Shown one piece after another: positions 2,218 through 63,543 of a DNA stretch of 64,000 nucleotides. The notes under the pieces are model-generated. The model did no database searches, had not been told where the DNA came from, and saw only the letters and a program-made list of their open reading frames with translations. The DNA lies in contig DF237420.1 in the NCBI GenBank assembly GCA_000708835.1, positions 1-64,000 of the forward strand. Direction: 5' to 3'. The stretch comes from Klebsormidium nitens. Its lineage: Eukaryota; Plantae; Klebsormidiophyceae. Every line of letters starts with the position of its first letter. Within the stretch, counting starts at the first letter, position 1. A program made the position numbers and the translations under genes.

Positions 2218-5200
2218 ATGGCGTCAAAGTCGTCGCCGCCAGGGGGTCTAGTGCCTAACGAGAAGGAGACCGCAATCCCGATGCCGGCGAAGGCGCAAGG
2301 TGCGCAAGCGAGGAAGCATGAGGGCCTGATCGACTACAGTATGGTGGACGGAGCGAACCTGTTCAAGCCGCCAAATCCGAACAGCCCGCTCGTCGCGCCC
2401 CTGAGGGACCTCAAAAAAGCAGGACTGGTAAGTGGGTTTTCAGGCGTCGTGTTAGAGTGGGCGTCCTGGGACCTGGAACGCCTGATGTCACATAGCGACC
2501 TTCGATGCAAGGCTTCTGCTCTTCTGTCGCCACAAATGTTGGTGTTTATGATTGTGCCCCGAGCACTGGGCCCTGCAAACAGTAGCCGGGTCATGATATT
2601 GCGTAGACGTCCCCTTTCGAGTTGTGGAGTGAGCTTTGACGGAAAGCCCGTGGCGAGGAAGGGCGGTAGCTCTTCTTTTCACTACAATGGGGTCTGGATT
2701 TTGTGGCGAATTTCGGCTCCTCGTTCTCGAGAAGGAAAAAGAGAGGAAGCAGGCCATCACTCGTTTCGGCAGAACGCTAAGGTCACGTTTCTCCTGTATG
2801 CAGACTCCGCATGGCACGTCTAAATAAAAACTTCAAGAAGGCTAATCGGCCTCTCTTTCTCAGCAAGTAAATAGAGAGGAGACAGACTATATTCTCTACC
2901 GCAGACGTTGACTAAGGTCGTATGTCCTCCCCGTCTGCAGATCCCTCACGGCACGTATATATACGACGCCAACCACCCGATCCGGCTCCTCTTCCGGATG
3001 ACCGGAACCGCCGCCAAGATGGCGTTCCTCAGTTCCAGTTTCTGGCTAATCATATGCGCCCACGTGTTGCTCCTCATCTGCTACTACCAGACCGACCATA
3101 ATAAGATCCGCATCGATACGACACCTGGCAACACGCCGTGGCCGTTTCTGCGGTCGAGTACATATGCCGGCTTCCTGGGGACGCTGGTCTCGTTCGTGCT
3201 CGTGTTTCAGACGACGCAGAGTTATAATAGGTGAGCTAACGCCGGCACATGGCGCTTGCTGTGGAAAGTCAGCTCGTTTCTTCACCGGAATGACGAGTCG
3301 TTCTTTGTAAGGATAAACCGACACCTGTCGGACGTTTGGAAACGGATGAATCATAAAAGTTTGTCGTTCTTGGCTAGCCAAGGCGCGAATGATCTACAGG
3401 TGTTAGGACCAGAGCTTGGCGTAGAGTTTGGAAGGATGACGTTTAAGTCCGCGGAAGTACAACGCTGGGGCTCAATGCGAACTCCGTCTGGAGCGAGACG
3501 AGAAGAGACCCCAGTTTTGAAAAAACTGTTGCATGTAATAATCATGTTCGAAGGAACAGTACTCGTGAACCTGACTGGAGTTGTTTGAAGCTTGACTGCA
3601 AAGCAAAGCCCGTTTCAGGTCCGCAGTACAGCGAAACTTCCTCCTTCATCTCCATAAAGTATGACTGTCGGCTGTGACCCCAGACGCGTTAAGAAGGAAC
3701 CCATTTGCTTACTTTGCCCTGCGCCAGCATCTGAAACGCAGTCACGTAACTCATCAGTCCTAAACTTTTTCACCGGTGACCAATCGCACTCTGCCCCAGA
3801 GGCCATGTCGCCCCGCATGACTGACGAGCGCAAACCCGCCTACATCTGAACCGCAGTCTATAATTCATTTAGAAAGTGTGTTAGTCGGCGACCGAAGCGC
3901 ACTCTTTCCCAGGAGCCCGGTCGCCCGGCATGCCTGACGAGCGCAAATGTCGTGCAGGTTTTTCGTGCAGTACGACGCGTGCAACCTGGTCGCAAAAGCC
4001 GCGTGGCAGTTCACGACGGACCTGCGGACCCGCTTCGATGACGACCGCTTCCCAGGTGGGCCGCTCTGCCTTGTCAAAGTTTCAGGGTTGTAGGATGTCG
4101 GGCCTTCAGGGATTTTGGTTTTTTTGTTACGGTGAGATCACGTTTTTCCAGGGTTTCAAAGTTAGCAGCGCTCCAACAGATTAGTGTGGTGAGCAGTGCT
4201 TTGTACCAAACGCTCAACAGGCCTGGAGCAGATCCTACGTTGGTCCCTGATGATTCAAACCGGTTCGTTGCATCTAATGGTTCTGGTCTATCAACCCGGT
4301 TCAAGGTTGACAACTTGAGAAATGGAAACATACCCTGAACGCAACCCAAGCTAGACAAACCAGGTTTCAGATTCCCGGAGAAGTTATCGTCCGGCTTTGG
4401 TTTTGCCAGGAGCGGATATCGTCAGCAAGAAGCTTCTCAACATCATCGTATCGCGTGCTGCTACCTCAGTTTCGGCTGGCTCCCTCGCCACAAGAAAGCT
4501 AAGTGATCGGTTGACCAGCAACTTAAGCAGTGTGTTAACGCGCCCCTACTTTCTCTTGGCAGGCGCAACTGTCGTCCGCAAGAAACTGCTCAACTATTGC
4601 ATCGCCTGCTGCTACCTCGGCTTTGGCTGGCTCCCGCACTACAAGAAAAACGACCTCCACGTGTGGACACTAAAACGAGTGCACGACCGACAGCTGCTGA
4701 CGCCAGAGGAGGAGGCGCACATCTTGGCGCTGCCCGAAGGAGTGAAGCCCGTCTTTTCGGTAAGTTTTTTGAACGGAATATTGAAAAGGGCGCTGCAAAC
4801 CAAGGTCCCGTTTGCAACCATTCGTACGATTTTCTTTCAAAAGGAAAGACTGACTCTGCTTCCTTACTTTTTCCGAGTTCTTTTAGCTTGTTTTCGCACG
4901 ACAAGAAATCGTCCTTCACGTCGGGACGCTGATACGAGCACGACAGCCAGCACCGACGCCTGACGAGGAAGCGCACATACTGGCTTTGCCCGAAGGAGTG
5001 AAGCCCATTTTCTTGGATTAAACAGAGAGTTTGGAGTTCGTGTTGTGAACGAGTCTCTACGTGGATCTTTTCCGGTCTCAAAACTGGACAATTGAGACCA
5101 GTCGAGGGTTGCTGGTCAGACGAAATTCGCATGTGCTTATTGATCTCATGTGTGAGATCCGGTGGGCTTTTGGTTCATAGAGTCACGGAAGAGCGGAAAA

Positions 5201-8200
5201 CCCCCTCTGACTCCACCCGGTTGCCTCCCTTGTACGGTGTGCCTTGTCCTTCCGCTGATTATCCGACGCCTTCTTGGTTCCACTACAATGTCCGTCTTTC
5301 TGGTGAGGGGCTTTCAGGAGATCCATCCAGGGGCGGAAGCACTCCTGTATTTCCCCCTCTTTTTCCTCTTGTCTTTTTTCTTGTTCCAAACGAAAGAAGC
5401 ACTCGTCTAAACGCCCGGTTTTCTCCCCCGGCCAGGTCGTTAAAAGGACAATGTACCTGATCTTCCAGAGTGTTTCTGGCGGGGGCACATCACTGGCCGG
5501 CTCGTTAGAAAGTATACCTTCCAATCTATCAGTAGTAAGCTGCATCAACAACGAGGTCATGCGACGAAGCTGATAAAATCCAAAGCCCTAAGCGAATCCT
5601 CCACCTTCTCCGTACACAAACCCGCCCTACCCCCCGAGCCAACCCCTACTATCCACCGAGCTTGACGTCGTATCTACACGCTTCTTTAACTAGAAGAGAA
5701 TTTTCAGAGAGCTCGACCAAGAACGAAAGTACTCGTCTAATGCCGGTTGTTTCTGCCGGCCAGGTCGTCAAGTGGACGTTGTACCTCATCTTCCAAGAAG
5801 TTCGGGCGGGGCACATCACCGAGCGGACCACTCACTTTTTCTCCCTAATTTTCTTTTTTATCCGTTTCCCCCTGCCTCCCAATTCCGACCGCACTAATAA
5901 ATCAGTCCTCTGAACGCAAGCGCTTGTTTCTTTCTGCCAGGTCGTCATGCAAGTGGACGATGTATCTCATCTTCCAGGAATTTCTGGTGGGGGCACATCA
6001 CTATACCTCCCGACCTATGAACACGAAGCTGCATGAGAAATGGGGTCCTGCGACAAAGCTGATAAAACCCAAAACCCTGAACTGAACTCTCCTCGGCTTC
6101 CGACTCTCCTGCGCTAACCCTCGAGCCAACCCCATCCATGCACCGTGCTTAACATTCGTATCCATTTGCTTCTTTAACTGTAAGAACTCTCAAAGATAGC
6201 TCAGCCGTGAACGGAAGCACTTATCTAAGTCTCCGGCTGTTTCCAGGTTGTCAAGTGGACGATGTACCTGATCTTCCAGGAGTTTCGGGCGGGGCACATC
6301 ACCGAGCGGTCCCACGACATGCTGGCCACCGCCTTCCTCCGACTCTTCAACGGATTCAGTACGCTGTATGAGTATGCGGCTATGCCGGTGCGTTTCAAAG
6401 CCTTTCCTAAAAGGACAAGCGATATGGACTCTGTTTCGAAGCTAGCTGAAAGACCGCTTTTGTCACAATTCCTTTGCAGAATCAAGCCCTCTTGCCACGG
6501 GAATGCTTCAAGTCGCGATACCGTACGTTGTGCTTTTTGAACGTCGGACACGACAGCGTCGTGCAAGCGTTCGAAGCAGAACGCAAAGGAAATCCAATTG
6601 TTTCCCCAATCCCCGTAAAATTTCGTCGAGCAGGCAGGGCCGACGCATCCGCTTTTGTAGCAAGCATGATCTATGTTTTTATCCATTCGAAACCTAACGA
6701 AGTTGATGAGCATACCCCTCACAGAAAGATCAATCGGTGAATAATAGGGTCGAACATGTAAAAAGAGAGAGAGAGCTCCATCCACCAGTCCGGCCTGTAT
6801 GAGCATGAACATCCAAGTCGTTAAAAGGATTGGCGTTTTGCTCGTGATCAACGTGCCGGTAAAACCTCCTCGGCATCATGCAGAAAGCGGACAATTAGCG
6901 AAGCGTTTTTGAATATGGAAGGCGTTGCAACTATCGTTTCGCAGCTAGCATTCATGGAACCTGTTTATCCTTCATCATTCAGCGACCGATTCGTCCCTGT
7001 ACCTCGGGGCCTTTCAGGTCTCTGCACTCACAAAGGGTCCTCCCTATTGCTCTTGTTTTCTGCTGCACAGCAACTTCTCCTATGTGAGAAAAACATTTGA
7101 TCTTTTTCGTCAACAAGAATCGCCACAGACGTCCAACCGGCGCGGTCACAGAACATGACAAATGAAAGCTTTGGGAGTTTCTATGCAGGTACCCTTTGCG
7201 TTCTACCACCTTCTGAACGTGATGGCTATCGGGTACCTGCTGATTCTGGCCTACACTCAGGTATGCCCCTTCTTTTCAACTGCTCAAGTTCGCTCACGCC
7301 TAGCATCCACTTGTGTTCAAAACGGTGGGCATGAAAGTCCGTCGAACAAATGGCTCGTTTCCAGGTTCCAAGAGTAACCTAGAGATTGTCTTTGTTGGTG
7401 ACGGTCTGAGCGAGGCTTTCCGCCAGCGCCTCCGGCCGAGTTCTTCTGGGGACGGCATTTTGGATTGGTGTGCGGGTTCCTTTTTCCTATGAATTTGCAG
7501 AGTTATGATCGCTCTGATTTCGTACGAGGTGTTCTCTTTCAATTGGTGATCAGTTTTCTGGTGATCTGACCGATTTCCGTAGGCTGTACACTAAAAGATG
7601 TCAGTAGATGCCTGATCGGTCACTGGTCCTCGCTCCGCTCCCACTTTTCTTGTTTCCAGTTACTGATCCATTCTCCCGATTGATCTTGACCCCCCCCTTT
7701 TTGGTCCCTGGCATGATCTTCTTCCAGTCACTGCAGTGGTCCATTTCCCGATGCTTCTGACCGTCCTCTGCACGCCGGGCACTACAGATTCTCTGCAATA
7801 GCTACGAAGCCCCGGGCAGATACATTCAACCGGTTCCTTGCGCTGATCGTATAGCAGACCCACTCTCGCCTCTCTACTTTCCAGGTGTTTGCCTCCGGTT
7901 ACTGGTCCATCTTTCCGATAATCTTGACCGTCCTCTGCACGTTGGGCATCTGTGAGCTGTCCGAACGGGGTCGCTAGATCCTTTACCGGTCACTTGCCTG
8001 AAAGTGCACACTAAAACTCTTTTTTTCCGCTCCCAGGTGTTTTCATCCGGTTACTGGTCCATCTTTCCGATGGTCTTGACCGTCCTTTGCACGCTGGGGA
8101 TTCGTGAGCTGTCCAATGCGCTCGCGGACCCTTTCGGTTGCGACGAAACGGACATCCCCGTTCTGGACAGCGTCCTGCTGTGGGACTGGTTCTTCACCGA

Positions 8201-8252
8201 CTGTGCGATGGGGCACATCGAAAAGTTCAAGTACACGGTAGAGTCGGAGTAG
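2218..8252 (+). CDS. Bestrophin-like (RFP-TM/UPF0187-type) anion channel, copy A; 7 coding exons, 407 aa
   Basis: Exons 2218-2427, 2941-3230, 3958-4055, 4563-4759, 6247-6387, 7189-7260, 8037-8252, all GT-AG. They total 1224 nt in an unbroken frame. Motifs are VLVFQTTQSYNR (cf. bestrophin LLVFRTNxSYxR), PVPFAFYHLL and RELSNALADPFGCDETDIP (cf. ExPFGxDxxD), with several hydrophobic segments. Exon sizes are identical to copy B. Confidence 0.85.
5390..6000 (+). pseudogene. Three decayed partial copies of bestrophin A exon 5 with their acceptor sites, inside intron 4
   Basis: ccag|gtcgt.aa.(t)ggac..tgta(c/t)ct.atcttcca....ggggcacatcac occurs at about 5431, 5760 and 5938, versus the intact exon at 6247. 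The copies carry frameshifts or truncations. Confidence 0.8.
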
Positions 8253-9725: not shown

Positions 9726-12700
9726 TCAAAGAAGAGGAACCTCGCGGTTGAAAATCCACGAGAACCGGGCACTCTGCCGGCCGGGCTTCTTCTTCGCTTT
9801 CGCCGCGAGCCGGTCGCCCAGGGCGCTCACCCGAGCAGGCAGTCGGCACAGGTAATCCTGCATAAAGGATTGGGTCGTACACGGTCATACGCCGTCTGTT
9901 CGCCTATACATACAGAAGGGATTCTGGAACGAGATTATAGGTAGTTTTGAGATCGTCTCTGTAGATTTGGCTGGAGCCTGAGGTTCTCGAGTCGTAGTCT
10001 ACACATGATTTGGCGTACTTGTCATATGTGTGAAGCAGGGAATATAGGCTCGATGCGAATGCATACGCATACTCCACAAAATCCCAAACGAGAGACGCTA
10101 ACACACATAACATGCGCTACGGCTACGGCCGGCCTATGATAAACGGGAAAGAAAAGGGTATGGAATGATCCGTACCTGCATGGCCTCTGCCTCGGGAGAG
10201 AGCCCCGAGCGCTCTTCCACCTTCCAGAACCTCACAAGGTGCTCGACGATGTCAGCATAGTCCCGCGCAGTGTAAACCCCGACCTTCTGAGCGACCTTCG
10301 AAGGACGGAACAAAACCAGGTTAGGTTCGTTCCTGATTGCCTTCACCCTCAATTCGCGCGGACCAATTGGACAAATGTTTTGGACACGAAAGAGACGAGT
10401 TGAGTAGGATCCGACGTTCAAAGGACGTGGAAAAGCCAAGGTTAGTTTCGTCAAGTCTGCCCTTCAAGTTTTTCTCCGCGCCAAACTCTGGGTCGAATTT
10501 TGCTGATTTGAATGAGACAAACGAAGTAAACTGTCGAAGGAGAAAGTGACCCAAGACAGCCCATTCAAAATATTGTAAGCTGAACGCCGCTGTCAGAAAC
10601 GAGGTAAGTTGACGCGTCTCGAAAAAGAAAGATGGAACAAACACGAGACGGAAGGAGTTCCTCGCAAACCATTCCCGGAACTGCACAGCGTTTCGTTTGA
10701 AACCGTCGGACCTTGATACGCTGGCAAAGACGTGAAGAAGGATGTCAATCAGAATAGTGAGTTGCTAAAAAGCCTGTACAACTTTGCAATCAGAAGAACC
10801 AGTGTTCCCAGGAACGGGGTTTCTCTCTGTGCCCCGGCATGAGAATAGAAAAATGAGAAGGTAGGTACGGGAGAGCAAATCTCACAGCTAAGATTGAGAG
10901 GAGTCACGGTGACCAGGTAAGTTGTGCAAAACCTTTTCGCTCGTCTGACTGATGCGTAACAGGTAGCGCAATGAAATTCACGAGACTGGTATAAGCAACC
11001 TCAGAAACTGGTGAACAATTTGGTTTCTCCAAAAAGACCCACCTCCGAAAAGTCCTTGAATAGCGTCTCGCTCTTCCCATCAAACATGTAATGCGCCGGC
11101 ATCGTAATCTGTTTCTGCATCATATCCCCAAAAGCCATAGTCGCCCCGTTTGGATCTAGATCGAAGCACTTTCCGATGATCTTCTTGTACGCCGTCTCGT
11201 GGCGCCGCTCGTCCGCCGCGATCGTTCCGCACAGCTTCGCGAGGACGGAATCCCCGGCGGAACGCGCGAGGCGCGCGGTCGCGCCGTGCGAGACGAACGT
11301 CGCGCGCTCTTGGAAGGAGGTGTAGATGAAGCCCAAGTACGGGTTATTCTCCGTTTTCGGGTCCTGAAAGATAACAAAAAAGCAACCGGTTGGCTACGGA
11401 CGTGGCGCTAAAAGTATCGAGAGAAAGAATGGTGATTAAGCGCAGACATAGTCCTGCCCGACGAAGATGATTGGAGACCTGTGAACGCCACAACCACGGA
11501 TGCGCTCTGAACAAGCTCGCCAACGATTTGGGGTTGTGTACGCGTACAGCACGAGTAGCTTTCAGTCCGGTTGTTTGAGAAAGAATATTGTTTCCTCACT
11601 CTGGTCTCAATTAGACGTAACGGAGTTTTTTATTTCAGAGTTCGGAATATTTTTTCGTGCCGGATCCTAGATCGTTAACACCCAATGACTGCGAGACTGC
11701 GCATCCTGTCAGGAAGTTTGAGACACCTGCAAGGAGTGAGCTCGTTGCTAAAGTACCGTCCTCTTTCGATGATGTCTAGTAACTGCATGACCAACATGTA
11801 GCAAACATCGCCTTTAAGCACGCAGTCTCTTGCGGAACAGTCCCTCAAGCATCGCCGCTTCGTGTGAATTGATCTGCAGAAGTAGATCCAACCTCTCACC
11901 ATTCCCGACCCAATAAGATACTGCGTCGTTCTCTGCACGGCTTGCATATCCACCCTTCCCGTCAGGTACAAATACTGCTGTAACGCGTCTCCGTGCCGGT
12001 TCTCTTCCGCAGCCCAACCCCGGCCCCAAACGGCCCACGGCGTTACGCTCGCCCCGCTTTCGTCCCGGGTCACATCGAGAGTGTTAAGCATCGTCAGGTA
12101 AGTCGGCAGGGCTTCCTCTGACACCATGTCGCCCACCAAGCAGACGAGGACGTCGTCCGGAATTCCGGCGGAACGCGCACGGAGGTCGGCGACGCGCGCG
12201 AGGAAGTCGTCGGAGGAGGGGTCCGGGAGAAAGTCCTGTAGTAGACAGTTCCCAAGTTCGATTGGCGATGTTGATTCCCAGGTTTGAGAAATCAAAATAT
12301 GGAACAGAGCCGGCTGCTTCGAAGCTTACGTGCAATGAAATGCTCCCAGCTGAAGGAAGAGTTTCAGCGTTTTCAAACCAGGCGCGCGCGGAGGTCAGGA
12401 GACACGGATCACGTCGTTCGAGTGTCAGGAGCAAAGTCCTGCGAGTCATTCGTGAAGAGAAGGGAGATAGGACAGGTGCCCGCAATGCAAGCAATTTTTT
12501 TTCATTTGTGTGGTGCGGATCTGCTTTTGGCCGATGGCGATTCAAGCAGTCCATAGCCTGGGAAAAAGCTGGAGGGGTCGTTAAAGGAAGGGTCCGGAAG
12601 AAAACGTTGCAAGAAGAAAGCGTCGACTCACTTAGCATCAGTGGTTATCTGCCGTGTAAACAGCATCTAACACTCCAAACTTTCTCTACTTTTATGTTAC

Positions 12701-15058
12701 AATGGGCTGGAAAAGTTTCTGGCCGTTGAATCTCGGAGCGGATTTCAAGGTCCTGCGAAATTCACGGTACAGAGTTTCGATGCAATTGAGGGCTAAGATG
12801 CCGTTGACTGGAGAGGAGGAGCACTCGGCCACACGCGGAAAGTCGCCTGGCAAGGTATCCAAAATGAGGTCCTGCAAAACTAGGATGAACCGGAACCGAA
12901 ATCTGAATCGGATGAGAGGAGCATAGTTGGCAGTCAGGACTCGAAGGCATCCGACGGCTGAGATGGGCATCGACTGGCCAAGGAAACTTGTTGAGAGTCG
13001 TTAGTCGCGCTCGGATCAAGCACAAACAGCGCGTCGTTTGTAAAACTCGTACTGGCATACCTAGTGAAAGGAGAAACGAGCAGAATGTACTGGGACTACA
13101 GGAACCTGGAAGGATTATGTGTGAATACGTCAAATGTTGAAAGCGAGGTACAGCACGCGTCTCAGATAGTCAGGGGCTGCTTGCATTCACAAGAATCCGT
13201 ACCAAAAGCGCACTGAAAAGGCTTGAGCGCTCAGGTCCTAATGTTCGGAGTCTGCCGCAAGATCTGTGGGAGGGTATATACATGGAACGGCCCACATCAC
13301 ACATACCAATCTTTGAATGTCTGCGCTCCAGTATGAATATCACTTGCCTGAAAGCGGCTACAGTTGGTGAGTCTTTCCGGCTCGAACGCAAATCGAGTCT
13401 CCTATAGCTTGTTTACACCTCTAAAATCACACAAGAACGCAGATGCACGGTGACCAGAAGGGAAAGGACCAGCTCTTCTGTCACCGAGAAGTTCTTCAGA
13501 ATCACATACAGAATCTGCTTCAGATAAGCTCACCGCGGGCTGCCAGTTTGTGCTAGGGTCTTTTAGCATCGGCACAATCTCCGCTTCCATCCAGTCCGTC
13601 AGTGACGCCACGACCTCCGCCCCGTTTTGTGTGAGACTGTGGGTCTTTCCCCACGAAGTTTGTCGGCGCTGTTTTGGATGCGTAGCGCTGGGTTTGGGGG
13701 GGGTTAAGACCGGAGTAGGCTCTTGGGCTGGGGGCAGTTGATTTGGGATTGCAACGGGCACTGCCCTGGAAGAACAAGACAGAACTTCGATTTCTGCAGA
13801 TTCTGAGAGTTGTGGAGGTTGGTGTGCTTGATCAGGTGCGAAGGCACGTTTGGAACTGATTCCTGAAGACGAGCACACTGCTCTTAAAGAAGTGGATGCC
13901 AATTCTGCTTTTGGTTCTGAGCATTGCGTCACTCATGTATGGAAACTTGACATCATGATAGACAACATCTTGAAATTGTGACGACCCTGAAAGAACGAGG
14001 CGACAACTCTTCTTTCTGCTGTGACTTTTTGTGGGTTCAAAGTGACCCCAAGCCTGTGCGACGGAGTATGCACTGGGAGTAACCTGAGCACTGATCTTGT
14101 ATAGGGAGTGACCTTTCACAGCTCTTTTCAACCAAACCCCTTACTTGAAAATTAAATGATAAATGATAAATGCAGGCTGGTCTAGTTGACACTAAGACTA
14201 GGAGGTTGGTCGGAAGGAGTTGTAGAAAGTGACCTTGTATGGAGTAATCTTCTGGTTATGACCAATCTCCTTGAAGACATATAACTCTGACAGGGCTTTG
14301 TAAACTTTTGACGTAAAAAGGTGAACGGGGCGAGTGCTTCCCGTTCCTTCTTGCAGGACTAGGGAGAAGGTGGACCGTACCGCCACGGCCTTTTCCTTGG
14401 CACAGCCCACTCATCACTTCCTTGTCTCTTTATATCTATCCATTGAGACCCACTTTGATAGTATGAGAGCACGTCCTGCTCAGTGGCACTATCCAGTTGC
14501 AGCATTGACCCTTCCAGTTATGAAAATGACCAAGATGAGAGCCGAAATCAGCATAGGCGTTTCATCACACATGGGACAAGCCTACTCCTATCTATGATCA
14601 GCAGTCAATCGAGTTAGCAATTAACCACTTCTCGAAGGGCCGCTAACCCCCACCATTGAGCATGAAAAACTATCGAGCACGAAATGTGGCCTAGCTCAAC
14701 CAGCACTGACAGCTGGTTCCAAGTCAACATGGGTCTGGGCCAGTCATGTTTCGATGCAAAAAGGCAACAAAGCCTACTTCCTATCAAAAGTATCAGCTCA
14801 TTTGGGGCTAAGTCACCTTGCAATGTCAGCAACCTGTGTCATTGAGCAAGCCACTCTGGGACGGCAGCCGATTATCGCAGGGTCAATTCCTCTCCCGCGT
14901 TTCAGCCCTCCGGTTCTGTATTGCCCCAGAAGCGAGCGCTGTAAAACCAGTTTGCTGGCCAACCATGTCTGCAAGGCACCCTGCTCTTGGGGAATCGTGC
15001 ATGAGAAACTAGACACTGGGCAGCGCGTGTCAACATGTGGCAAGACTGCCAAGGCCAT
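9726..15058 (-). CDS. SAD: Soluble plastid acyl-ACP desaturase (stearoyl-ACP desaturase family), copy 1; 6 coding exons, 460 aa
   Basis: Exons (minus) 15058-14817, 13765-13534, 12235-11900, 11363-11043, 10295-10176, 9857-9726 total 1383 nt with matching phases. Motifs are [55 protein letters not shown] and FSWIFNREV. All di-iron ligands are present. Exon 1 (MALAVLPH...RPRVACSM) looks like a transit peptide and is the least certain exon. Confidence 0.92.
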
Positions 15059-16154
15059 TGTGGTGTCAATTGTTTGGCTGGATGCCTGGTGCGCTGATCC
15101 AAATCCGTTAGAACACTGTCAGCAGCTGAAAGGCGAGCCCAGCTCAGATGTAACGCTGGGCAGTATTGGGCAGCTCAGGTAGAAGTTTGCTGCTCGTTCT
15201 TGTTTCTAAGTCTGGTTCTGCTGCTTTCAAGACCGAAATGCTAAGGAAGGACAGCTTACTAAACGGCGCGTGTCGGCATGAGGCCGTGTTTCCAAGGCTA
15301 CTAAGCTTGACCGATACTCGTGCGTGAATGGGCAGCTCGGATTGAATGCGGCTTTGATCTGCAAGGTGCTACACAGCTTTTGATCAGCCTTGTCAGCTCA
15401 AGCGGACCGGCAATACCTATATGTTGCATCGGATTAGCCCGCTTTGTTATCCAGGAGTCGTGAATTTGTCTGAATCAGAGATTGAGGTAGGTCTATTCTT
15501 TGCTTGTCAAGCTAGCGACATGCAGGAATGAGAAAACGTGGGACTAAAAGTTGAATGACCCTCAAGATTTCAAAGCCGCTGATTTGACTCGAGCTCCTCT
15601 GCAAAATCCTTCAGACACGTTTCCTGAATCTGCAAGCAGACCGTGTGGAATTGCAGCCCGAAAAGCCTCAGCTGGCTAGCTCCCAGTGCTGGATACATAT
15701 ACATGTAGAACAACTTAGCTTCTAGTACGTTTAGATCTACCGTATTCTGGATTGGAAGAAGCAACCTCACTCAGTCTTCTTCTACTAGTACAGAGCGGAC
15801 TCTTTAAATGTACCTACGGTATCGTGATCGACACGCGGACAACCTGGTACCCAGGACCGTACCTAATTGGTTAGCACGGCATTATGCGGGGAGAGCGTAT
15901 GATGTCGGATGATGGTACGGAACATCGCCTTTTCAGCGACTGTGAGCTCGAGGTCTCGGGCGTTCAGTCGCCTGGACTCACAAGTCACTTCAATGCCAAT
16001 TATCGTACGGCCCCGCCCCTCTCCGTGTTCACTCGGAAAAGGATGAACAATCTGAGGACACCACGCTCATCAGCTGGAGACGTGGGACTCCTATACCTGG
16101 CGATGGTCGCCGGAGCGCGGGTGCCAAACCGCACGGCGGCCCCTGGGAGGCGGC

Positions 16155-16506
16155 NNNNNNNNNNNNNNNNNNNNNNNNNNNNNNNNNNNNNNNNNNNNNN
16201 NNNNNNNNNNNNNNNNNNNNNNNNNNNNNNNNNNNNNNNNNNNNNNNNNNNNNNNNNNNNNNNNNNNNNNNNNNNNNNNNNNNNNNNNNNNNNNNNNNNN
16301 NNNNNNNNNNNNNNNNNNNNNNNNNNNNNNNNNNNNNNNNNNNNNNNNNNNNNNNNNNNNNNNNNNNNNNNNNNNNNNNNNNNNNNNNNNNNNNNNNNNN
16401 NNNNNNNNNNNNNNNNNNNNNNNNNNNNNNNNNNNNNNNNNNNNNNNNNNNNNNNNNNNNNNNNNNNNNNNNNNNNNNNNNNNNNNNNNNNNNNNNNNNN
16501 NNNNNN
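16155..16506. other. Assembly gap (352 N) in the SAD1/MATE divergent intergenic region
   Basis: Run of n characters. Confidence 0.99.
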
Positions 16507-32468: not shown

Positions 32469-33074
32469 GGCATGGTGTCAAAACACCTTTGTAGCGGTGC
32501 ACTGAACTCCGGTTTTTCGAAGTTTTGAGGGGTGCATGGAAGCCGGTTTTGAGTAAAGCCCGAATTTGTCCGAGTGGGTATGGAAGCCGGTTCTGCTTTG
32601 CGCTCACCAACTTCACTTTTGGGGCGGGGTTATGGAAGTTCGTTCAAGGCGTTGAAGTTTTTAGAGGGGGGCTATTACAAGAAGAGCGACGTTTCTGGGG
32701 TCGTTTTCTCCGGCAACGTAGACCCCCAACAAGAATCCTGTGTCTACGGCCCGTCAACGAAAACCAGAAATTCTTAGATCTACGAGGTTCTTTGAAGGTT
32801 TTAGGGCTATACGTATGTGTCTAGTTCTTGAAGACACCTGGTTCTAACCTGAGTTACAGTAAAACCTAAAGCGTTTTGCAAGCCAGATCAAAGGTGAGGG
32901 GGGGAAAGCGGTCAGTACAAATATTGTACTACTAGGGGTCAAAACATCGACTACAGAGGCCCCCCCCCTGGAGGTCGGTTTTAGATGCTCATGGGCCTTC
33001 AGTTGGACCCCCTGGAAGCCGGTTTTTAAACCGGAGTTCAGTGCACCACTGCAAAAGTGTATTGACACGATGCC
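32469..33074. mobile_element. MITE-like non-autonomous element with about 46-bp terminal inverted repeats
   Basis: Left arm ggcatggtgtcaaaacacctttgtagcggtgcactgaactccggttt (32469-32515) matches the reverse complement of 33028-33074, with a perfect core GGTGCACTGAACTCCGGTTT. The interior repeats gaagccggttt and has no credible ORF. No clear TSD was found. Confidence 0.6.
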
Positions 33075-52000: not shown

Positions 52001-52182
52001 CATATTGGTGGGCAGTGCAAACCTAACGAATCGGCTTCGAATTTCACTACGTGCAGTTTTCTTTGGACGAAGCTGCTCTTCCCATTGGCGCGGCCATCCA
52101 CGCCAATCTGGTTCTAGACTTCTTGAACGAGGGAAGCGGGGAAGATGGCAAGGAAACCGGGGCCGTGAAGGAAGAGCTGTAA
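46066..52182 (+). CDS. M20D amidohydrolase of the ILR1/IAR3/ILL hormone-amino acid conjugate hydrolase family; 10 coding exons, 445 aa; signal peptide and C-terminal KEEL
   Basis: Exons 46066-46197, 46685-46750, 47087-47374, 47952-48123, 48721-48817, 49512-49624, 50567-50643, 51088-51203, 51585-51735, 52057-52182 total 1338 nt. Motifs are RELHQYPEL, VRADMD, MHGCGHDAH, FQPAEE, IFGLH, GGHGAWPH, YPPTVND, MGAEDFAFY and LHTP. The hydrophobic N-terminus is LAVALVLCA and the protein ends VKEEL*. Intron 4 needs a GC donor. Confidence 0.92.
49669..49910. repeat. Intronic inverted repeat / foldback with arms of about 75 bp in amidohydrolase intron 6
   Basis: Left arm gagccgaaccagggcggaaccggagcttccgttccggaaaagtggcggacgaaccgg..gagctaggccccgg matches the reverse complement of 49840-49910 (ccgggcctagctccggttcgttcgtcacttttccagagcggaagctcaggtttggtccttgttcggctc). 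The loop contains two aaccggttc palindromes. Confidence 0.75.
51331..51470 (+). repeat. Short dispersed intronic repeat containing telobox-like aaccctaaccc; other copies at about 55435-55505 and 59790-59915 (minus)
   Basis: aaaccctaacccaaacatcaccgcacccgtacccatcctaacc aligns by eye with the reverse complement of 59860-59910 (aaccctaacccggaaacatgcatgctccgcacccatacccaccctaaccacc) and of 55435-55505. Confidence 0.5.
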
Positions 52183-54007: not shown

Positions 54008-57000
54008 TCACAGAAGCGCCACCTCGCGGTTGAACACCCAGCTGAACTTGCCCACACGTGCGGGGGATCCTTTCTTCGCCCTGCCGAGCGTTCTTTCCGC
54101 GAGGCGACGGACGCGGTCGGGCAGTTTGCAGAGGTACTGCTGCGCGGCTTCGGCCTCGGGGCTCAAACCCCTTCGCTCGCGCACCTTCCAGTAGCGCACC
54201 AGATGCTCGACGATGTCGGCGTAGTTGAAGGAGGTGTAGACGCCGCACCGCTGGGCGACCTGGAAGGGTAAGGGAAACGGGTTACGGGTTAACCCCGCTG
54301 CCTGGCCATTCAAGGCTGTTAGAATGGGTTACAATTCGTTGAGCTTAACCTCTTTTGCTCGCGCACCTTCCAGTAGCGCACCAGATGCTCGACGATGTCA
54401 GCGTAGTCGAAGGAAGTGTAGACGCCGCACCGCTGGGCGACCTGAAGGTTATGGAACGGGTTAAGGTTCAACCCCGCTGCCTGAAACGGTGATAGGAATC
54501 CGTTACGATTCGCTCTGCTTGACCCGGCTGTTGGCGCACTCTTCTTCTAGCCCTACCGACGCTGAAATGTGGTGGAGACACCGCACCGCTGGAACAATAA
54601 GAGAACCGGGTTACGATTTGCTCAGCTTAATCCCGCTGCTTGGGCGAACTCGAGGGGTACTAGAATTGGGTTGAGACTGGCTCGGCTGAACCCCACGGTT
54701 CTTACGCTCTTCGTGTATCCCAGATGCTATCCAATGTCTGCTTACCGACACTTTGAACGGTGCACTCGAGAAGCGTCTCCTGACAGACCCACTTCGTCGA
54801 GGTCCGAAAACAAGGGACTCTTGCCGTGCTTTGCGTATCAGATCAGGACACGAACAGGTAAAACGGAGGGCAGAAACGAGAGCTTCGTAAGAGCCCCACT
54901 CCGCAGATGTCCTGAAAACTCGTGCAGCTCTCGCAGTTCTCATTGTCCACTGCGAGAACACGCAAAACAGTACGTAGGCGGGAAATCTGCATCGTCTCAA
55001 TAAAGCACATTTGTGCAAAGCCATGCGCAACAACGAGCTGCCAGAGACAGTCTTGGGAGCCGTGAGGCCTTACACGCTTCGAGCCGACGCCAGCACTACG
55101 GCCTCCGGACGCTTTACCGATTCTCCATCCTAGGAGATCTGCGCGTTGACGCCAGCAGAGCTTCTCAACAAAACGACTGTGCACTACGTCTTTACAAACC
55201 GCACCACCTCGGACTGTTCTTGATTTATTTTTGGGGGGTAGGTAATCCTTTTTTTTTCCGGTGGAGACGCGCGGACTCAAAGCGGGAGCATCATGCGGGA
55301 ACAGTCCACGAACAGTCCACGAACAGCGTTGGACTCTCCCCGTCCTTACCGTCCAGCTTTCGGGGCACGGGTGACTCTGGGACTTAAAGGCGTGTGACTT
55401 AAAGCGTGTTACTTAAGATAGGTGCCCAGGAGACGGGTGGGGTTGGCAGGGTGGTTAGCCTGGGTTCGCGTGCGGAGCGCGTGCTATAGTTGTGTTAGGG
55501 GTTCAGTTTACGTGTCCGGGTAAAATGAATGTTAGGTCACATGCCAAGGTAAGGCGAGAGTTATCAGTATGCACGGGTGGGGTTAGGCAAAGGCTTATGG
55601 TGGTGCGGGTGCGGAGAGCGTAGAATTTTGGTTTAGCCCTTCATCTAGGTCAAGGGCTTCTAGTTCAGAGGGCTTATTGACGACCGAAGCGAGAAGTAGA
55701 AGATACTCATGAGCGCCCACCTCGGAGTAGTCCATGAACAGAGTCGGGCTCTCGCCGTCCTGCATCATGTGAGCAGGCATCACCATCTGCTTCTTCATCA
55801 TGTCGGCGAAGGCCAGGATCGTGCCGTCCGGATCCAGGTCCATCAGTTTCGTGACGATACTGCAGACAGGTAGGGGATCTCTTTGTCGCATCTGTCAGGT
55901 CAATGATTTTCGTACTTGCAGCAGATTTGCCGACTGGGAAATAGCTCTCGACGTTCGTGGTGTGAGATTTCCGTTACGCCCTCCCGCTTGAAGAAAAAAC
56001 TTCCGCCAGGTTGAAGTAACGTTGAACTACGTCGACCTCCTGCGAGGCAAGCTCGCGGACAGCTTGGTTAGGTTGAGACGGCATCGTAACCAGAAGCTTT
56101 TTTGATAGGCTGGAGTACCGCCGAACGGTTAGGAACCAGTCATTCCAATTGTAACAGTATGCAATGGCGTTGACTCGAACCCAAGGGTCTGCTTTACTGT
56201 GTCGGGAAAGAGCGACTTCTGACTTCTATCTGTCACATTCCTAAGAAGCTAGTCATGACTGCGGCAACCTTTACCTTAAGGGGAATAAGGAGAGTCGGTA
56301 CTTCACCAGGCTACAGTAATCTGGCCTTCTTGTGAAAAAGGATAATCCTACTCTGGGATTCTCTAGGTCTTCCGACCTTCCCTCCTCAAGCCGTTAAACC
56401 TAGCTTTTTGGTGATCGAACAAGGAATAGCCAGAGTGACATCACTAGAAGAGAACCAATAGGCGTTATGCTTTTTGGGAAAACAACCCAAGGCTTGTTCG
56501 TGCTCCCTCCGGAACGTCTTCGAACAAAAATACACTGAAAGGAGATCGGAAGGTGAAGATAAGTACCTGCCATACGCTATCTCGTGCCGCTTCTCGTCGC
56601 CGGCGACCACGCCGCAGATCTTGGCCAGCCGATGGTCGCCAAGCTCCTGCGCGCGCGCAGCCATGACGCGGTGCGAGAGAAACGTCGCACGCTCCACGAA
56701 GGTTGCGTAGACGAAGCCCAAGTAGGGATTGTTCTCCGTCTTGGGGTCCTGGAAATAAAGGTGGAACGACGAAATTTGCAGAACTGATCGTAGAAGCAAG
56801 ATTGAAAGCGTCACGAAGGCGTCCAAGTAATGCTTAGTCCCCGTCTTGAGGTGACTGCGAATGGGTGCACAACTCTGATTGCAAGAGGGAGAATCGTATC
56901 CGTAACGGAAGTTCCTTAGGATCTTCTGTATGCGGACCTGTCGATCTGCATCGCGTGAAAAAAATCAACGGCATGTGTGTCTCTTGGGCCGAGGAGAGGG

Positions 57001-60000
57001 TTTCGTCGCCCCAATTTATGGCAGCGCCCCTAAGATCTCTCCTCAAGGTCTTTCTTGGGCAGCAAAGACTTTTCCCCTCCCGCAGAGATGACGAGGAGGT
57101 TACTGAAGGGCGAAGCCTCAAGAGCGCTTCAAGTCAAGCAAGATTCTCAGATCAACGGCTACATCTCCGTTCCTGACGTCACTTGGATGGACGGCCACGC
57201 CATCATGCCGGTAGGTACCAAAGCCTGGGGCCGAACGTCATCTGGTACATACCTGCCTGACCTGGGGCCGACTCGAGCCGCGCCGACGGAGCGCGAGTTC
57301 CTCAAAGGCTGCCAATCTAGTGATTGTTGGGAGGACTCGTCGTTGTATCGAAACACGAATCCAAGATTCAGGTGCAAAGCGGCTGCAAGTCAGGGCTCAC
57401 CATTCCGGAGTTGACGAGGTACTGCGACGTCTTTTCAAGCGCGTGCATGTTGACTTGACCGCTCAGGTAAAGGTATTGGTGAAGCACTTTGCCGTGGCGG
57501 CTCTCTTCTCCGGTCCAGGCGCGGGTCCATCTGCAAACGGAACGCCATGGCCTATCAGCGGAAACAGAACGGAAGATGCTGTGACCGGAATTGGAGCGGC
57601 CGGCAGCCAACAAGGACGGTAACGGAACGGGAGAGAAACCGAGCGGAAGTCACCATAAGCGGAGATAGAGCGGAAGCCACAATTGACGGAAACAGCGCCG
57701 ACGGAAAGAGAGCGGAAACTATTGTGAACAAGAAGAGAGCCGGAGCCACAAGAAAAGAAAGCGAAGACCATGAGCGGATTCAAGACGGAAGCCACGATGA
57801 TTGGAAACAGAGCAGAGATACAGCGGGAAGGTCTGCAACGGAAGCAGAAGGAAGCCATCCATATATACGAAGTGGAGGCCACTAGGGAACGGAAAGAGAC
57901 CGGAACCGCCATGATTGAAACCACAGCGGAGACGCTAGTTTCATCGATAACGGAGCCGAAGCGGCATAATGGACAGAAGCAGAGCGAAGGGGCCATTGTG
58001 AACGGAAATGAAGTGAGAGTTGCTGTGAATGGAAGCAGCGCGGAAGCCACAGCGATTGGGAACAGAGCGGAAAAGGCTGCGGACGGAAAATAGAGCGGAA
58101 GCCACCCTGTCGGAACGAATCCGGAAGCTACTAGGAAGGATGCAGAGCGGACGGGCGAGATTTGGCAAGCTGGAATCGGTCCAGATAAGTTCCTGTATGG
58201 GGGCCTCGTCATCTGCCCGGTTTCATCCCCTTAGGCTAACGGCAGCTTGGCGTGCTAGATGTCAAAGATTTAAACAGTCCACAATCGTTGGTTTACAGGC
58301 AACATGTCTCTCCGAACGTCTGATTCTCATCATCTGAAGGTTTTCCTACAGCAGAAGTATGCAGAAACATGGAACGGGACAAAAGAAAAGGGTCAAAGTC
58401 GAGGCGGCTGTTCTTCAACCTCACCTGGCCCAGGGGGTCATATTCGCCCCGGTACTGACCCCCAAGCAAGCTAGCCTGCTGGCATCTAGGCATACTCGCA
58501 TTCATATTCTCTCAACAAGAATTCTAACATCCTGAGAAACCACCAAAAGATCGACAACCTCGCAGCTGACACTCTCGGCACTCTCACCTGGCCCAGGGGG
58601 TCATATCCGCCCCTGAATCGTCCCGGGTGCCGTCGAGCGTGTTGAGCATGATGGAGGAATTAGGGAGGCCTTCTTCGGACACCGTGTTCCCCGCCAGGCA
58701 CACCCAAAAGTCGTCCGGAAGTTCTGCGGACCGCGTGCGTAGGTCCGTCACTTGCTGGACGAAGTCCTCCGCCGAGGAGCTCGGAAGCAGGTCCTGCCAT
58801 AGGAGATGAGTGGTGAGCATCAGAAGCGATGAGGAACAATGATTCACGAAACGTGTTTCAAGGATGATCAACAAAGTCCTCAGCTGACGAGATTGGAAGA
58901 AGACCCTGGCGTAAGGATGCAGATGAGCAACGTTTTACTTAAGGTTTGCTATTGCGCATGAGGGCCCCTCGATTGCTAGACAAAGTCCTCCGCCGAGGAG
59001 CTCGGAAGCAGGTCCTGCATTAGGAGATGAGTGGTGAGCATCATAAGCGATGAGAAACAATTGGATTAGAGGTTCACGGAACGTGTTTTGAAGGACCGTC
59101 AGGTGATCAACAAAGTCCTCTGCTGAGGAGCTTGACAATAGGTCCTGGCGTAAGGGAGGCAGAATGGAGTGAGATGAGCACCGGCTTCTTGAGGTTTGCG
59201 CACTGTGCGCGCAGGTTTGTCGTGTGCTGGACAAAGATCTCCACCGAAGGAGTTCGGAAGCAGGTCTTGCCATAAGAGATAAGTAGTGCGAATAAGGAGA
59301 CGAGGACCGACGGCTTGTTCAAGGTCTACTTGAGTACTCGCTAAGATACTGGACGAAGTCGTCAATGGAGAACTTCAAAAGCTGGTTCTGCGGTCAGGAG
59401 ATAAACGGATCTGGAGCCACAAAGACGAGCGTGTTAAAAGAAACGTGAACAAACCAAGCGTCATCAGGACAAGAAGGATTGAAAGGACGTGTCCAATTTT
59501 GGCATGACACGGATTGAATCGCCGCTGTCAGCCTTATTGGCAGCTGCTACTCGCTCCTAAGACTCTATGCATAGTGAAACACGGACTTAGAGCACAGAGT
59601 CACGACGTGATTTTGAAGCGTCCCTTCAAAAGAGTTGAAATTAAGATAGTTTTTCTGGTTTCACCACTCCTTGCAGTCTGACGAAACTCTTTGTGCGTCG
59701 AGTCTGCCAAGAAAGCAAGGTAAAAGGGTCTACCAAGACGAGTTGTTCCAAAAATGAGATCCACTCTTGGACAAAGGTAGCAAGCTGACCCGATCCTCGA
59801 GAAGATCACAATAAGCCGAGATAATAATGAGTTAACCGCAATGAAGACGGGGTGGGGGTAGTTTGGTGGTTAGGGTGGGTATGGGTGCGGAGCATGCATG
59901 TTTCCGGGTTAGGGTTCCAGTGTTAATCGGAGCTTATATTTTCTTGGCTTATTATCAGCTTTCTCGAGTTTTATTGATCCAACCTCACCGAAGGCTGCCA

Positions 60001-61172
60001 GTTGAACTCAACCCGGTGCTCGTATCTTCCCAGCAATTCCTCCTCCACCCAACAGTCCATTGACCGAATGACCTCCATTTGCTTGGCGGTCGTCGTGTGT
60101 GCAGGAGACGCGGCTTTAGGGGGCCGCTTCAGGCTGGGAGTACCGCTGGTACTAGCAGGATCGCTTTCTTGCTTGGGGCTGATCTCCCTGCAAAGAGACG
60201 GGGAGCCTAGTCACCTTCTGCTGAGGCTTTCTCTGCTCCAATCGACTCCGACGTTTGTTCCCGACTGTTTCCTTCTGGCAGTGGGGCGTTACAAGCTGGG
60301 AGCGTTGCTGGCGGAAATTCCTCAAATTGTCTCCCTGCAGATAGACGGAGGTCTTTAAACTTGACCAGGATTGAGATTGACATGGCTCCAGATTGACCCC
60401 GGATTTCTGATCAGGCGTGACTGTTTCCTTCTTTGTGGGCATTCTTCCCTGTCGGCAAAGAAGCAGAGCTTAGTGAGCTTTTCAGCTGAGGCTTTCCGGA
60501 CTCTGGTTTAACCCAACGCCTTTTCCATGCCCAACGTCTCCTTCTTGTGGTGCACGCTGGCAGAGTCGCTTTCTTATCTGGGACTGACCTCCCTGCAAAT
60601 AATAGGACTGCTCAGTAAGCTTCGACTCGAGCTTTCTACGCTCTATAACGCTCCTTGACGCTCCGCTTGACAACAGATCTCGCCTCTCACTCACCAGAAG
60701 TGCATTACGACATGCCCACCGGACCCCTGACTTTGCACTCCACCTTTCAAAGGAGGAACAATCCAACCCAATGAAAGCAGTCCACCTCCAAAGAAGATCA
60801 GGACCTATCCCTTGGCCATCATTTGCACGTTGCTTTTAAGTCACACCCAAAGCAGCGCTGAGCTTCCCCAGTAGATATCATCTGAGAGATGACTAGAGAT
60901 TTAGTATCCCAGCTCAGAGATTCAGAACCCAACTAATGTTCTCATGCAAGGAGCCCAAAAAGAAGGAAACTATCGACGCACCGGGCAGGGGCTGTTATCG
61001 CAGTCACCGTAGCAGAGACATGCGGGCGGTGTCTCGTTCGCAGTGGGGCTGCCTGACAACCAGCGCCGGATGGAACCTTTCTGGAGCAGAAGACAAGATC
61101 CGCTGACTGAGCCGCAAGCTGCAGCAGGGTCCTTGGCAGGTGTGCTCGGCACGCACTCGTAGCTGACTCCAT
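54008..61172 (-). CDS. SAD: Divergent soluble acyl-ACP desaturase, copy 2; 7 coding exons, 432 aa
   Basis: Exons (minus) 61172-60982, 60187-59989, 58793-58588, 57530-57401, 56748-56567, 55859-55721, 54259-54008 total 1299 nt with matching phases. Motifs are [48 protein letters not shown] and FSWVFNREV. Exon 1 is transit-peptide-like ([11 protein letters not shown]...HVSATVTA). Confidence 0.88.
54350..54441 (-). pseudogene. Near-perfect 92-nt duplicate of the 5' part of the SAD2 last exon, with its own AG acceptor
   Basis: It translates [30 protein letters not shown], versus [30 protein letters not shown] in the full exon at 54259-54008. Confidence 0.8.
57540..58130. repeat. Degenerate tandem/low-complexity array of (aga)gcggaagcc-type units inside SAD2 intron 3
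   Basis: gagcggaagcc, gcggaaac and acggaagc recur about every 30-60 nt. The array produces the spurious 249-aa low-complexity ORF 57463-58212. Confidence 0.6.
58860..59290 (-). repeat. Four decayed copies of the SAD2 exon 3 acceptor plus exon start
   Basis: caaagtcctc..c.ga.gag..cggaagcaggtcct-like units occur at about 58872, 58981, 59111 and 59232, versus the true exon boundary at 58793. Confidence 0.8.
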
Positions 61173-63197: not shown

Positions 63198-63543
63198 ATG
63201 GATCAGGCTACGATGTCGATGCGCTTCCCTCACAGCTTGTCGCGCTACGATCTTCTTCACAGCTCCTCATGGAGCCCTACAGCAGACCAAGTTATCTCAG
63301 CCATCCGCTCCCATTGGCTGAGCTTCTCCTTTCTCGCCACTCTAGTTGCGCTGCTTCTCCATGCGTATCTCACCTTCTTTCACCGTCCGCTGCGCCTGAT
63401 CAGACACTTTCAGAAGCAGGGGATACGGGGACCACCCTTTCGGCCAATATTGGGGCACATGCCGGAAGTGCTGGCTGGAATCAAAGAGACGGCGCAGACG
63501 GGGGTGGTGTTTCCCAACCTGCTCAAGTGGCGGGAGATGTATG
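63198..63543 (+). CDS. Cytochrome P450, CYP72-clan-like; first coding exon only, gene continues beyond the window
   Basis: An N-terminal membrane anchor (WLSFSFLATLVALLLHAYLTFF) is followed by a basic cluster, then QGIRGPPFRPILGH (the CYP72-clan-type QGIxGP hinge) and LLKWREMY-G with a gtgagt donor at 63544. The start codon is uncertain (63198 or 63213). Heme motifs are not inside the window. Confidence 0.7.

Follow-up and report, generated by a model that had tools for sequence, protein, structure and literature searches.

Gene content and organization of the window

The locus analyzed here is a stretch of 64,000 bases (positions 1 to 64,000 of contig DF237420.1; hereafter the window), gene-dense and structurally unstable, which would belong to the nuclear genome of a streptophyte alga resembling Klebsormidium. 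Its G+C content is 51% and it contains two runs of N, at 16155-16506 (gap 1) and 20219-20810 (gap 2), and its open reading frames (ORFs) are short and interrupted, as an intron-rich eukaryote would show. Nine genes were identified, in the order BestA(+), SAD1(-), MATE(+), BestB(-), GH3(+), TRIC(-), M20(+), SAD2(-) and P450(+), that is, two bestrophin-like genes, two acyl-(acyl carrier protein) (acyl-ACP) desaturases, a MATE transporter, a GH3 acyl-acid amido synthetase, a TRIC-type cation channel, an ILR1-like M20D amidohydrolase and a CYP72-clan-like cytochrome P450. They belong to seven families, and each product would most likely do the usual job of its family. Comparison with contigs of related algae indicated that this is probably an ordinary neighbourhood undergoing fast rearrangement, the only conserved feature of which is the inherited linkage of SAD1, P450 and GH3.

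Pfam was run on 536 stop-to-stop ORF pieces of the window and then on chosen pieces singly, and a codon-usage score trained on confirmed exons was applied to all ORFs of at least 40 codons. Family and clan assignments were based on single exons or stop-free pieces as queries. An initial annotation had listed the same nine genes with no unrelated gene among them. All nine are indeed present, seven of the nine calls being confirmed at above-threshold scores, and neither the Pfam scan of the 536 ORF pieces nor the codon-usage scan detected an unrelated gene between them. On the other hand, the true gene order differs from that listing, the P450 gene is incomplete in the window and the bestrophin calls stayed below threshold. 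Extra genes considered at ORFs 1279-1467, 14625-15179 and 59978-60355 were rejected, having no Pfam support and weak codon scores. Searches of the window for tRNA genes and Rfam families gave no matches, and no transposon domain was found in the Pfam scans of its ORF pieces.

The coding strand alternates strictly over the nine genes, so that any two neighbours are oriented head-to-head (SAD1/MATE, BestB/GH3, TRIC/M20 and SAD2/P450) or tail-to-tail (the remaining pairs). GH3, M20, SAD2 and P450 lie within 29 kb, with SAD1 another 20 kb to the left. At least three non-homologous enzyme genes are physically adjacent here, as in plant-type metabolic gene clusters.

Related loci were found by searching the large GH3 exon against 1.84 billion representative proteins. 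Exon-sized ORFs encoded on JGI metagenome contigs and in Logan assemblies were returned, and a second protein search with a GH3 piece (P0002) of the contig called Rel-2 below yielded more of them. Three related contigs were compared with the window: Rel-1 (JGI contig Ga0590115_0001523, 77 kb; loci L001, L004, L005 and L008), Rel-2 (JGI contig Ga0590115_0001597, 75.5 kb; loci L006, L007, L011 and L012) and Rel-3 (a 10-kb Logan contig, locus L009).

The GH3 gene

The GH3 gene (34352-38695, plus strand) matched the Pfam GH3 N, M and C domains (PF03321, PF23571 and PF23572) with E values of 9e-34, 2e-23 and 1e-25, well above the cut-offs. Its exon blocks lie at 34352-~34576, ~35115-35279, 35706-~35804, ~36602-37162 and 37829-38695; the exons were mapped using homologues, and the N-terminal ones were read directly. 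The three adenylation motifs of GH3 enzymes are established, and the translations contain TSGSTDSRK (at the exon 2/3 junction), YGSSE and YRYRLED. The presence of at least four introns speaks against a recent acquisition of this GH3 copy from bacteria.

Against solved structures in PDB, the GH3 protein scored about equally with JAR1, GH3.8, GH3.12, GH3.5 and GH3.6. In a maximum-likelihood tree it was placed with the Rel-1 and Rel-2 proteins in an algal clade, here called clade X (support 99/98), which is sister to a clade containing the GH3 of K. nitens. These two clades and the long-branch JGI protein P0005 are together sister to the sampled land-plant GH3 proteins, and the tree did not place the window protein inside land-plant subgroup I (JAR1), II (indole-3-acetic acid, IAA) or III (benzoate). 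The K. nitens GH3 (P0187) is about 43% identical to the window protein, which sits in the separate clade X. It has been reported that the K. nitens protein cannot be placed in a subgroup (PMC10015382), and our tree agrees. The product is most likely a cytosolic ATP-dependent acyl-acid amido synthetase of an algal GH3 clade, judging from its family membership. Nothing in the GH3 sequence indicated a fatty-acyl substrate.

The cytochrome P450 gene

Only exon 1 of the P450 gene is contained in the window (63198-63543, plus strand, with a GT donor at 63544), the remainder lying past the window end. This exon encodes a membrane anchor and the motif QKQGIRGPPF. Alone it gave no Pfam or PDB match, and the heme-cysteine motif is absent from all six frames of the window because the gene runs off its end. 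In full-exon BLASTP comparisons, however, the exon was 59-79% identical to exon-sized ORFs in related contigs, and at the amino acid level it was 64% and 87% identical to the first exons in Rel-2 and Rel-3, respectively. The later exons of the Rel-2 orthologue match PF00067 and contain the heme-cysteine motif FGIGLRGCIG, together with FFFAGHETT and ESLRLFPP. Through this orthologue, with its PF00067 exons and heme-cysteine motif, the P450 gene called in the initial annotation is confirmed, though only indirectly. The N-terminal QKQGIRGPP-type motif and the motifs of the Rel-2 orthologue make the protein look CYP72-clan-like, and it is most likely a mono-oxygenase anchored in the endoplasmic reticulum (ER).

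The acyl-ACP desaturase genes

SAD1 (9726-13814, minus strand) gave three FA_desaturase_2 matches that are collinear on the profile (E values of 4.5e-48, 1.2e-46 and 9e-13). Its coding blocks lie at 9729-9866, 10158-10298, ~11034-11381, ~11891-12244 and ~13519-13814. The N-terminal coding block (13405-13932, minus strand) has no in-frame ATG; a further exon upstream probably supplies the start codon and the first part of the transit peptide. The core exon is about 70% identical to the delta-9 stearoyl-ACP desaturase of castor (1AFR and 1OQ4), with the EENRHG motif intact, and the core exons are 92-95% identical in amino acid sequence to those of the Rel-2 orthologue, although the introns no longer align. 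An intron divides the last two coding blocks in the window (9735-9863 and 10175-10302), and in Rel-2 (L012, 6178-6427) they are contiguous, revealing an intron gain or loss between the two lineages.

SAD2 (54008-58808, minus strand) gave FA_desaturase_2 matches with E values of 3e-19 and 4e-21, its coding blocks being at 54011-54268, 55715-55858, 56542-56766, ~57398-57530 and 58590-58808. Most conserved blocks of SAD2 are 57-66% identical to SAD1, with 46% in a gapped block at 57.4-57.6 kb. It has more introns than SAD1 and a different intron pattern, and it is about 64% identical to the castor enzyme, with the iron ligands kept. SAD2 is most likely an old, diverged paralogue of SAD1. Degenerate duplicated exon fragments of SAD2 were found at 54343-54524 and 58913-59029; the latter is part of a region (58725-59299) carrying a degenerate copy of a SAD2 exon with stops inside, and the start of the last exon is copied in tandem at 54161-54524.

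Both SAD1 and SAD2 thus have an FA_desaturase_2 domain with the di-iron EXXH ligands. At castor positions 114-118, 179, 181, 188 and 189, which we take to be determinants of delta-9/18:0 specificity, both match the castor enzyme; this is a lead only. The identity of about 70% to castor and of 92-95% between lineages gives SAD1 a housekeeping profile, and from these figures it is most likely a canonical plastid stearoyl-ACP delta-9 desaturase. SAD1 had been taken at first for a variant acyl-ACP desaturase providing an unusual fatty acid. Neither idea was borne out: SAD1 looks like a housekeeping enzyme, and the sequence gives no sign of a fatty-acyl substrate.

The ILR1-like hydrolase gene

The M20 gene (46535-52182, plus strand) was recognized by two matches to Peptidase_M20 (E values of 3.7e-14 and 1.3e-8; 53.6 bits against a cut-off of 24.6), by homology to ILL2 and by codon usage. 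Its exons are at 46535-46771, 47129-47383, within 47652-48113, ~49516-49605, 51073-51204, 51577-51708 and 52030-52182, and the Pfam stretch at about 47950-48090 falls inside 47652-48113. The best solved homologue is Arabidopsis ILL2 (1XMB), and the metal-binding motif MHGCGHDAH is conserved. One exon is 55-61% identical to land-plant ILR1-like fragments and up to 62% identical to metagenomic loci, which we take to be bacterial M20D loci. Protein searches with this exon returned plant fragments and no close algal orthologue; among metagenome contigs the matches did not exceed 62% identity, and the JGI samples containing the related contigs contributed none. The protein is most likely an ILR1-like amide hydrolase, judging from its homologues and conserved metal-binding motif.

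The last exon (52030-52182) ends in KEEL, a variant of the KDEL-type signal for ER retention. Several land-plant ILR1-like hydrolases are located in the ER, and the KEEL end would fit such a location for the M20 hydrolase.

Comparison with related algal contigs

Rel-1 is the closest relative, its GH3 piece being 89% identical in amino acid sequence and its introns aligning with 77-83% nucleotide identity. Even so, its homology to the window is limited to 33959-39540 (GH3 with short flanks) and 25158-26149. The latter segment, consisting of the last exon of BestB and its 3' region, has the same distance and orientation relative to GH3 in Rel-1. Between the two segments Rel-1 has, in place of exons 1-6 of BestB and the intergenic region (window 26149-33959), an unrelated sequence of about 8 kb and nearly equal length (L005, 9209-17162). 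The 27 kb downstream of GH3 in Rel-1 contain a PLAC8-like gene, one gene of no assigned family, an SMP/C2 gene and an LCM gene. In the approximately 43 kb around GH3 in this contig no other gene of the window was found, the bestrophin-B remnant excepted.

Rel-2, the GH3 piece of which is 56-61% identical to that of the window, revealed a different arrangement: a long terminal repeat (LTR) retrotransposon, SAD1(-), a conserved element, a BAHD gene(+), P450(-) and GH3(+). GH3 and P450 are head-to-head here, with about 0.85 kb between their start codons. The BAHD gene (L011, 12416-17469), which has three collinear PF02458 matches and the LGWG version of the DFGWG motif, is tail-to-tail with P450 and so stands beside the divergent GH3/P450 pair; no BAHD gene is present in the window. 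The LTR retrotransposon (L012, 1-3975; RVT_1, RNase H and integrase domains) lies just past the 3' end of SAD1. No M20, MATE, TRIC, SAD2 or bestrophin gene was found in the approximately 49 kb covered in Rel-2, and the 10 kb beyond GH3 have nothing in common with the window.

Rel-3, the whole length of which was covered, carries an orthologue of SAD1 with exons 89-94% identical in nucleotide sequence, followed by the same upstream element and, after 2.2 kb, by P450 exon 1 (80% nucleotide identity) in head-to-head orientation with SAD1. An origin of the Rel-3 arrangement by recombinational deletion between SAD1 and SAD2 was rejected, since Rel-3 retains the own exon 1 of SAD1 and the upstream element. 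At a more distant GH3 locus (L003), of the K. nitens-like clade, GH3 is flanked by mitochondrial-carrier and pyridoxal-decarboxylase genes.

When identities of SAD1 and P450 are compared, about equal distances separate Rel-2, Rel-3 and the window. Rel-1 is much nearer to the window. Linkage of SAD1, P450 and GH3 is retained in Rel-2 and that of SAD1 and P450 in Rel-3. The span from SAD1 through P450 and GH3 is about 20 kb in Rel-2 and 55 kb in the window, and in Rel-3 SAD1 and P450 are about 3 kb apart. None of the relatives examined had MATE, TRIC, M20, SAD2 or an intact bestrophin gene in the neighbourhood of GH3 or P450. Since these six genes are not shared as neighbours, the nine-gene set is lineage-specific: it was not encountered as a whole in any relative, and in the approximately 43 kb explored around GH3 in Rel-1 neither SAD1 nor P450 was found. 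The orthologues are therefore partly linked and partly scattered, three genes having kept company in Rel-2 and two in Rel-3. The interval between the element upstream of SAD1 and P450 holds no gene in Rel-3, one in Rel-2 and six in the window, and it behaves as a hotspot.

The conserved element and the assembly gaps

The element upstream of SAD1 (14749-15103, about 350 bp) is a conserved non-coding sequence about 1 kb from the gene, recognized by its homology to L009 and L012. Its counterparts in Rel-2 (L012, 10895-11186) and Rel-3 (L009, 4452-4776) show 68-71% nucleotide identity, and it is conserved across lineages whose introns no longer align; at its right edge the homology to both contigs stops. 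A small coding gene was considered and rejected here, since the indels are not multiples of three and the Rel-2 copy has an in-frame stop; the alignment also lacks a third-position pattern. Pfam and Rfam gave no match to the element, which is likely to be a regulatory region or an unannotated non-coding RNA.

Gap 1 (16155-16506) falls between genes, separating the SAD1 upstream region from the start of MATE; it begins about 1 kb past position 15103 and coincides with a break in synteny. Across it, BestA and SAD1 are tied to the other seven genes by the scaffold alone. Gap 2 (20219-20810) lies inside a MATE intron. Identical 18-mers occur on both of its sides, and the repeat 20121-20218 matches 20884-20981 at 90%; these are tandem copies of approximately the last 100 bases of a MATE exon and its GT donor, copied around the gap within 20121-21069. 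Since gap 2 falls inside these copies, it is intronic. The MATE exon before it ends at 20211 with its donor intact, and the next protein segment begins at about 21.8 kb, with no apparent loss of an exon. The sequence between this intron and P450 is free of N.

The scaffold join at gap 1 raises the question of an assembly artefact, in which the left 16 kb with BestA and SAD1 would have been placed beside MATE in error and SAD1 would truly adjoin P450. The homology to Rel-2 and Rel-3 spans SAD1 and its upstream element and ends at 15103, about 1 kb before the gap, and the next gene is P450 in Rel-3 and BAHD followed by P450 in Rel-2, in neither case MATE. However, 43 kb without a gap connect the MATE intron with the P450 exon of the window, and the gene that adjoins this exon is SAD2, not SAD1. 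A misjoin would moreover leave the seven-gene run from MATE to P450 intact. We consider such an artefact highly improbable; this estimate is not exclusive of the other readings of the locus.

Transporter, channel and bestrophin-like genes

The MATE gene (17168-23923, plus strand) was identified by PF01554 (E values of 1.6e-18 and 6e-11; 67 and 43 bits against a cut-off of 24.9), by the NCBIfam matE subfamily TIGR00797 (E value of 1e-18) and by codon usage. Its coding blocks include ~17168-17479, part of 18189-18605, 19411-19677 and 19963-20211, with further blocks at about 21.8 kb, 22400-22495 and 23381-23920. The TRIC gene (40922-42853, minus strand) was identified by PF05197 (E value of 6.8e-9; 36 bits against a cut-off of 25.9), with a collinear second exon (E value of 5.7e-4), and by codon usage; the coding blocks detected are 42581-42853, 41653-41820 and 40922-41041. 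A search of metagenome contigs with a TRIC exon found no relatives.

BestA (2218-8252, plus strand) and BestB (25517-30592, minus strand) form an inverted pair of paralogues with seven conserved exon blocks, which in BestA are at 2218-2430, ~2926-3231, 3956-4057, 4559-4765, 6244-6393, 7183-7269 and 8028-8252. The blocks of the two genes are 83-92% identical in nucleotide sequence, except for the first (72%). BestA was recognized by this conservation and by codon usage, and BestB as the inverted paralogue of BestA. The last exons matched Bestrophin_2 with 19.4 bits in BestA (E value of 8e-4) and 19.6 bits in BestB, both below the cut-off of 27. The remaining exons gave no match in a relaxed Pfam search, and NCBIfam and PDB gave none. 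A likeness to the UPF0187/bestrophin family is seen in the last-exon motif and at the beginning of exon 2, and from these features the bestrophin calls are likely to be right. Of the two bestrophins claimed for the locus, then, the paralogue pair and the last-exon resemblance stand, the match being below threshold in both.

The MATE, TRIC and bestrophin-like proteins most likely carry solutes or ions across membranes, as their families do. Besides the copies at gap 2 and in SAD2, small tandem copies of exon fragments were observed at the start of BestA (1748-2283), and the 5' part of bestrophin exon 5 is copied in tandem in both paralogues, several times in BestA (5392-6312) and twice in BestB (27423-27660). 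The exon-fragment duplications in BestA, BestB, MATE and SAD2 are signs of instability.

Origin of the gene neighbourhood

In the initial annotation the nine genes were read as a single cluster for making, tuning and exporting a fatty-acyl amino-acid conjugate of an unusual kind, unsaturated or oxidised. In favour of this, the nine genes do occur and no other was detected among them, SAD2, a diverged desaturase, is head-to-head with P450, and the nearest solved relatives of the P450 C-terminal exon are the fatty-acid hydroxylase P450 BM3, a match that is expected for the lineage and not specific. However, the explored GH3 or P450 neighbourhoods of the three relatives lack six genes of the nine, namely MATE, TRIC, M20, SAD2 and the two bestrophins in intact form; SAD1 is a highly conserved canonical desaturase, and the sole connection of BestA and SAD1 with the other genes passes over a run of N. 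The bestrophins and TRIC, as ion channels, are unconnected to the proposed chemistry and have no place in it. With only SAD1, P450 and GH3 kept together in relatives, a nine-gene fatty-acyl amino-acid pathway is unsupported, and we regard it as very unlikely indeed.

The simplest history is that of a rearranged ancestral neighbourhood, because the window and Rel-2 link GH3 with P450, and Rel-1, the sister of the window, does not. An ancestral neighbourhood of SAD1, P450 and GH3 would have been followed by repeated local rearrangement, and in the Rel-1 lineage either the BestB-GH3 block would have moved out or its flanks would have been replaced. Common descent and rearrangement are enough to explain the linkage without selection.

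Several observations weigh against this history as a full account. The GH3/P450 pair of Rel-2, sharing a divergent promoter region of about 0.85 kb and with a BAHD gene beside it, looks like a cluster of specialised metabolism. The head-to-head partner of P450 is a desaturase gene in the window (SAD2) as well as in Rel-3 (SAD1). The neighbours have turned over heavily, yet the three genes retained all encode enzymes, and in the window a member of the ILR1-like family, which reverses GH3 chemistry, has been added 7.8 kb from GH3. Eight successive changes of strand would occur by chance in about 1 of 256 cases, a figure assessed post hoc, and the four divergent pairs made by the alternation could be co-regulated.

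These observations would be accommodated if GH3 and the CYP72-clan-like P450 were a co-adapted, co-regulated pair, in which a conjugate is made and then oxidised and linkage is kept by selection, the same pair acting with lineage-specific partners: the ILR1-like hydrolase and the MATE exporter in the window, and BAHD in Rel-2. A functional module of this kind would be limited to GH3 and P450, with a carboxylic acid being conjugated to an amino acid and the conjugate then oxidised; the M20 hydrolase would be a lineage-specific addition cleaving the conjugate, resembling the turnover of jasmonoyl-isoleucine (JA-Ile) and IAA conjugates in land plants. In addition to the close head-to-head arrangement in Rel-2, with BAHD tail-to-tail to P450, a distance of 24.5 kb separates the two genes in the window, where the M20 gene lies between them, and the membrane anchor of P450 and the KEEL end of M20 suggest ER proteins, like the known CYP94 and IAR3/ILL6. 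On the other hand, Rel-1 has no P450, M20 or BAHD gene within 16 kb upstream and 27 kb downstream of GH3, GH3 and P450 are neither adjacent nor divergent in the window, and ancestral synteny can account for the linkage that the window and Rel-2 share. We therefore hold a selected GH3-P450 pair to be possible but doubtful.

A bolder version, in which an ancient, selectively maintained GH3-P450 module of klebsormidiophyte-type algae recruits lineage-specific partners (the ILR1-like hydrolase, MATE and the diverged desaturase in the window, BAHD elsewhere) within a hotspot of gene gain between SAD1 and P450, so that the locus would hold a cluster older than land plants for the synthesis and turnover of an acyl-amino-acid signal or defence compound, appears unlikely. 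We accordingly favour the inherited and rearranged neighbourhood as the probable account of the locus. A small GH3-P450 module is a plausible candidate worth modest follow-up; a fatty-acyl amino-acid pathway is speculation.

Comparison with known systems

In Arabidopsis JA-Ile is handled by JAR1/GH3.11, CYP94B3/CYP94C1 and IAR3/ILL6, and the same three types of enzyme occur in the window, JAR1 and ILL2 being among the solved homologues of its proteins. The parallel with JAR1, CYP94 and IAR3 that had been drawn for the locus is reasonable for GH3, P450 and M20. Even for the three enzymes there are differences: the land-plant genes are generally unlinked, the P450 of the window looks like a member of the CYP72 clan, in contrast to CYP94 of the CYP86 clan, and the GH3 protein falls outside the JAR1 subgroup. 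If GH3 is cytosolic and both the P450 and the hydrolase reside in the ER, the layout would be that of the Arabidopsis set, which is a likeness and not membership.

The land-plant cycle of IAA conjugates, based on group II GH3 and ILR1/ILL proteins, likewise has both its synthesis and its hydrolysis enzymes represented in the window. The window gives no evidence of an auxin substrate, and the M20 exon is equally near to bacterial M20D aminoacylases. In Marchantia, MpGH3A (Mp6g07600) and MpILR (Mp1g20090) are on different chromosomes (PMC11663715), so the proximity of GH3 and hydrolase in the window would be unusual if functional. This proximity was not seen at the GH3 neighbourhoods of Rel-1 or Rel-2.

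As in the plant clusters for avenacin, thalianol and DIMBOA, non-homologous enzyme genes are close together in the window, and a P450 with a BAHD gene, as found in Rel-2, is a typical combination of plant clusters. Here, unlike in those systems, most members are not conserved neighbours, and SAD1 is a gene of primary metabolism. In a search of one library of papers no GH3-P450 cluster was found described in streptophyte algae.

On the questions of what GH3 does in algae and whether streptophyte algae conjugate hormone-like acids (PMC10015382), the window and its relatives give concrete candidates for study: in one alga GH3 forms a physical pair with a P450, and in another an ILR1-like hydrolase is close to it. 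If these genes act together, the synthesis, oxidation and hydrolysis of conjugates would predate land plants, and the locus would be a rare metabolic gene cluster of an alga. If they do not, it would be a clear case of fast reshuffling of a gene neighbourhood and a warning against reading pathways from adjacency alone.

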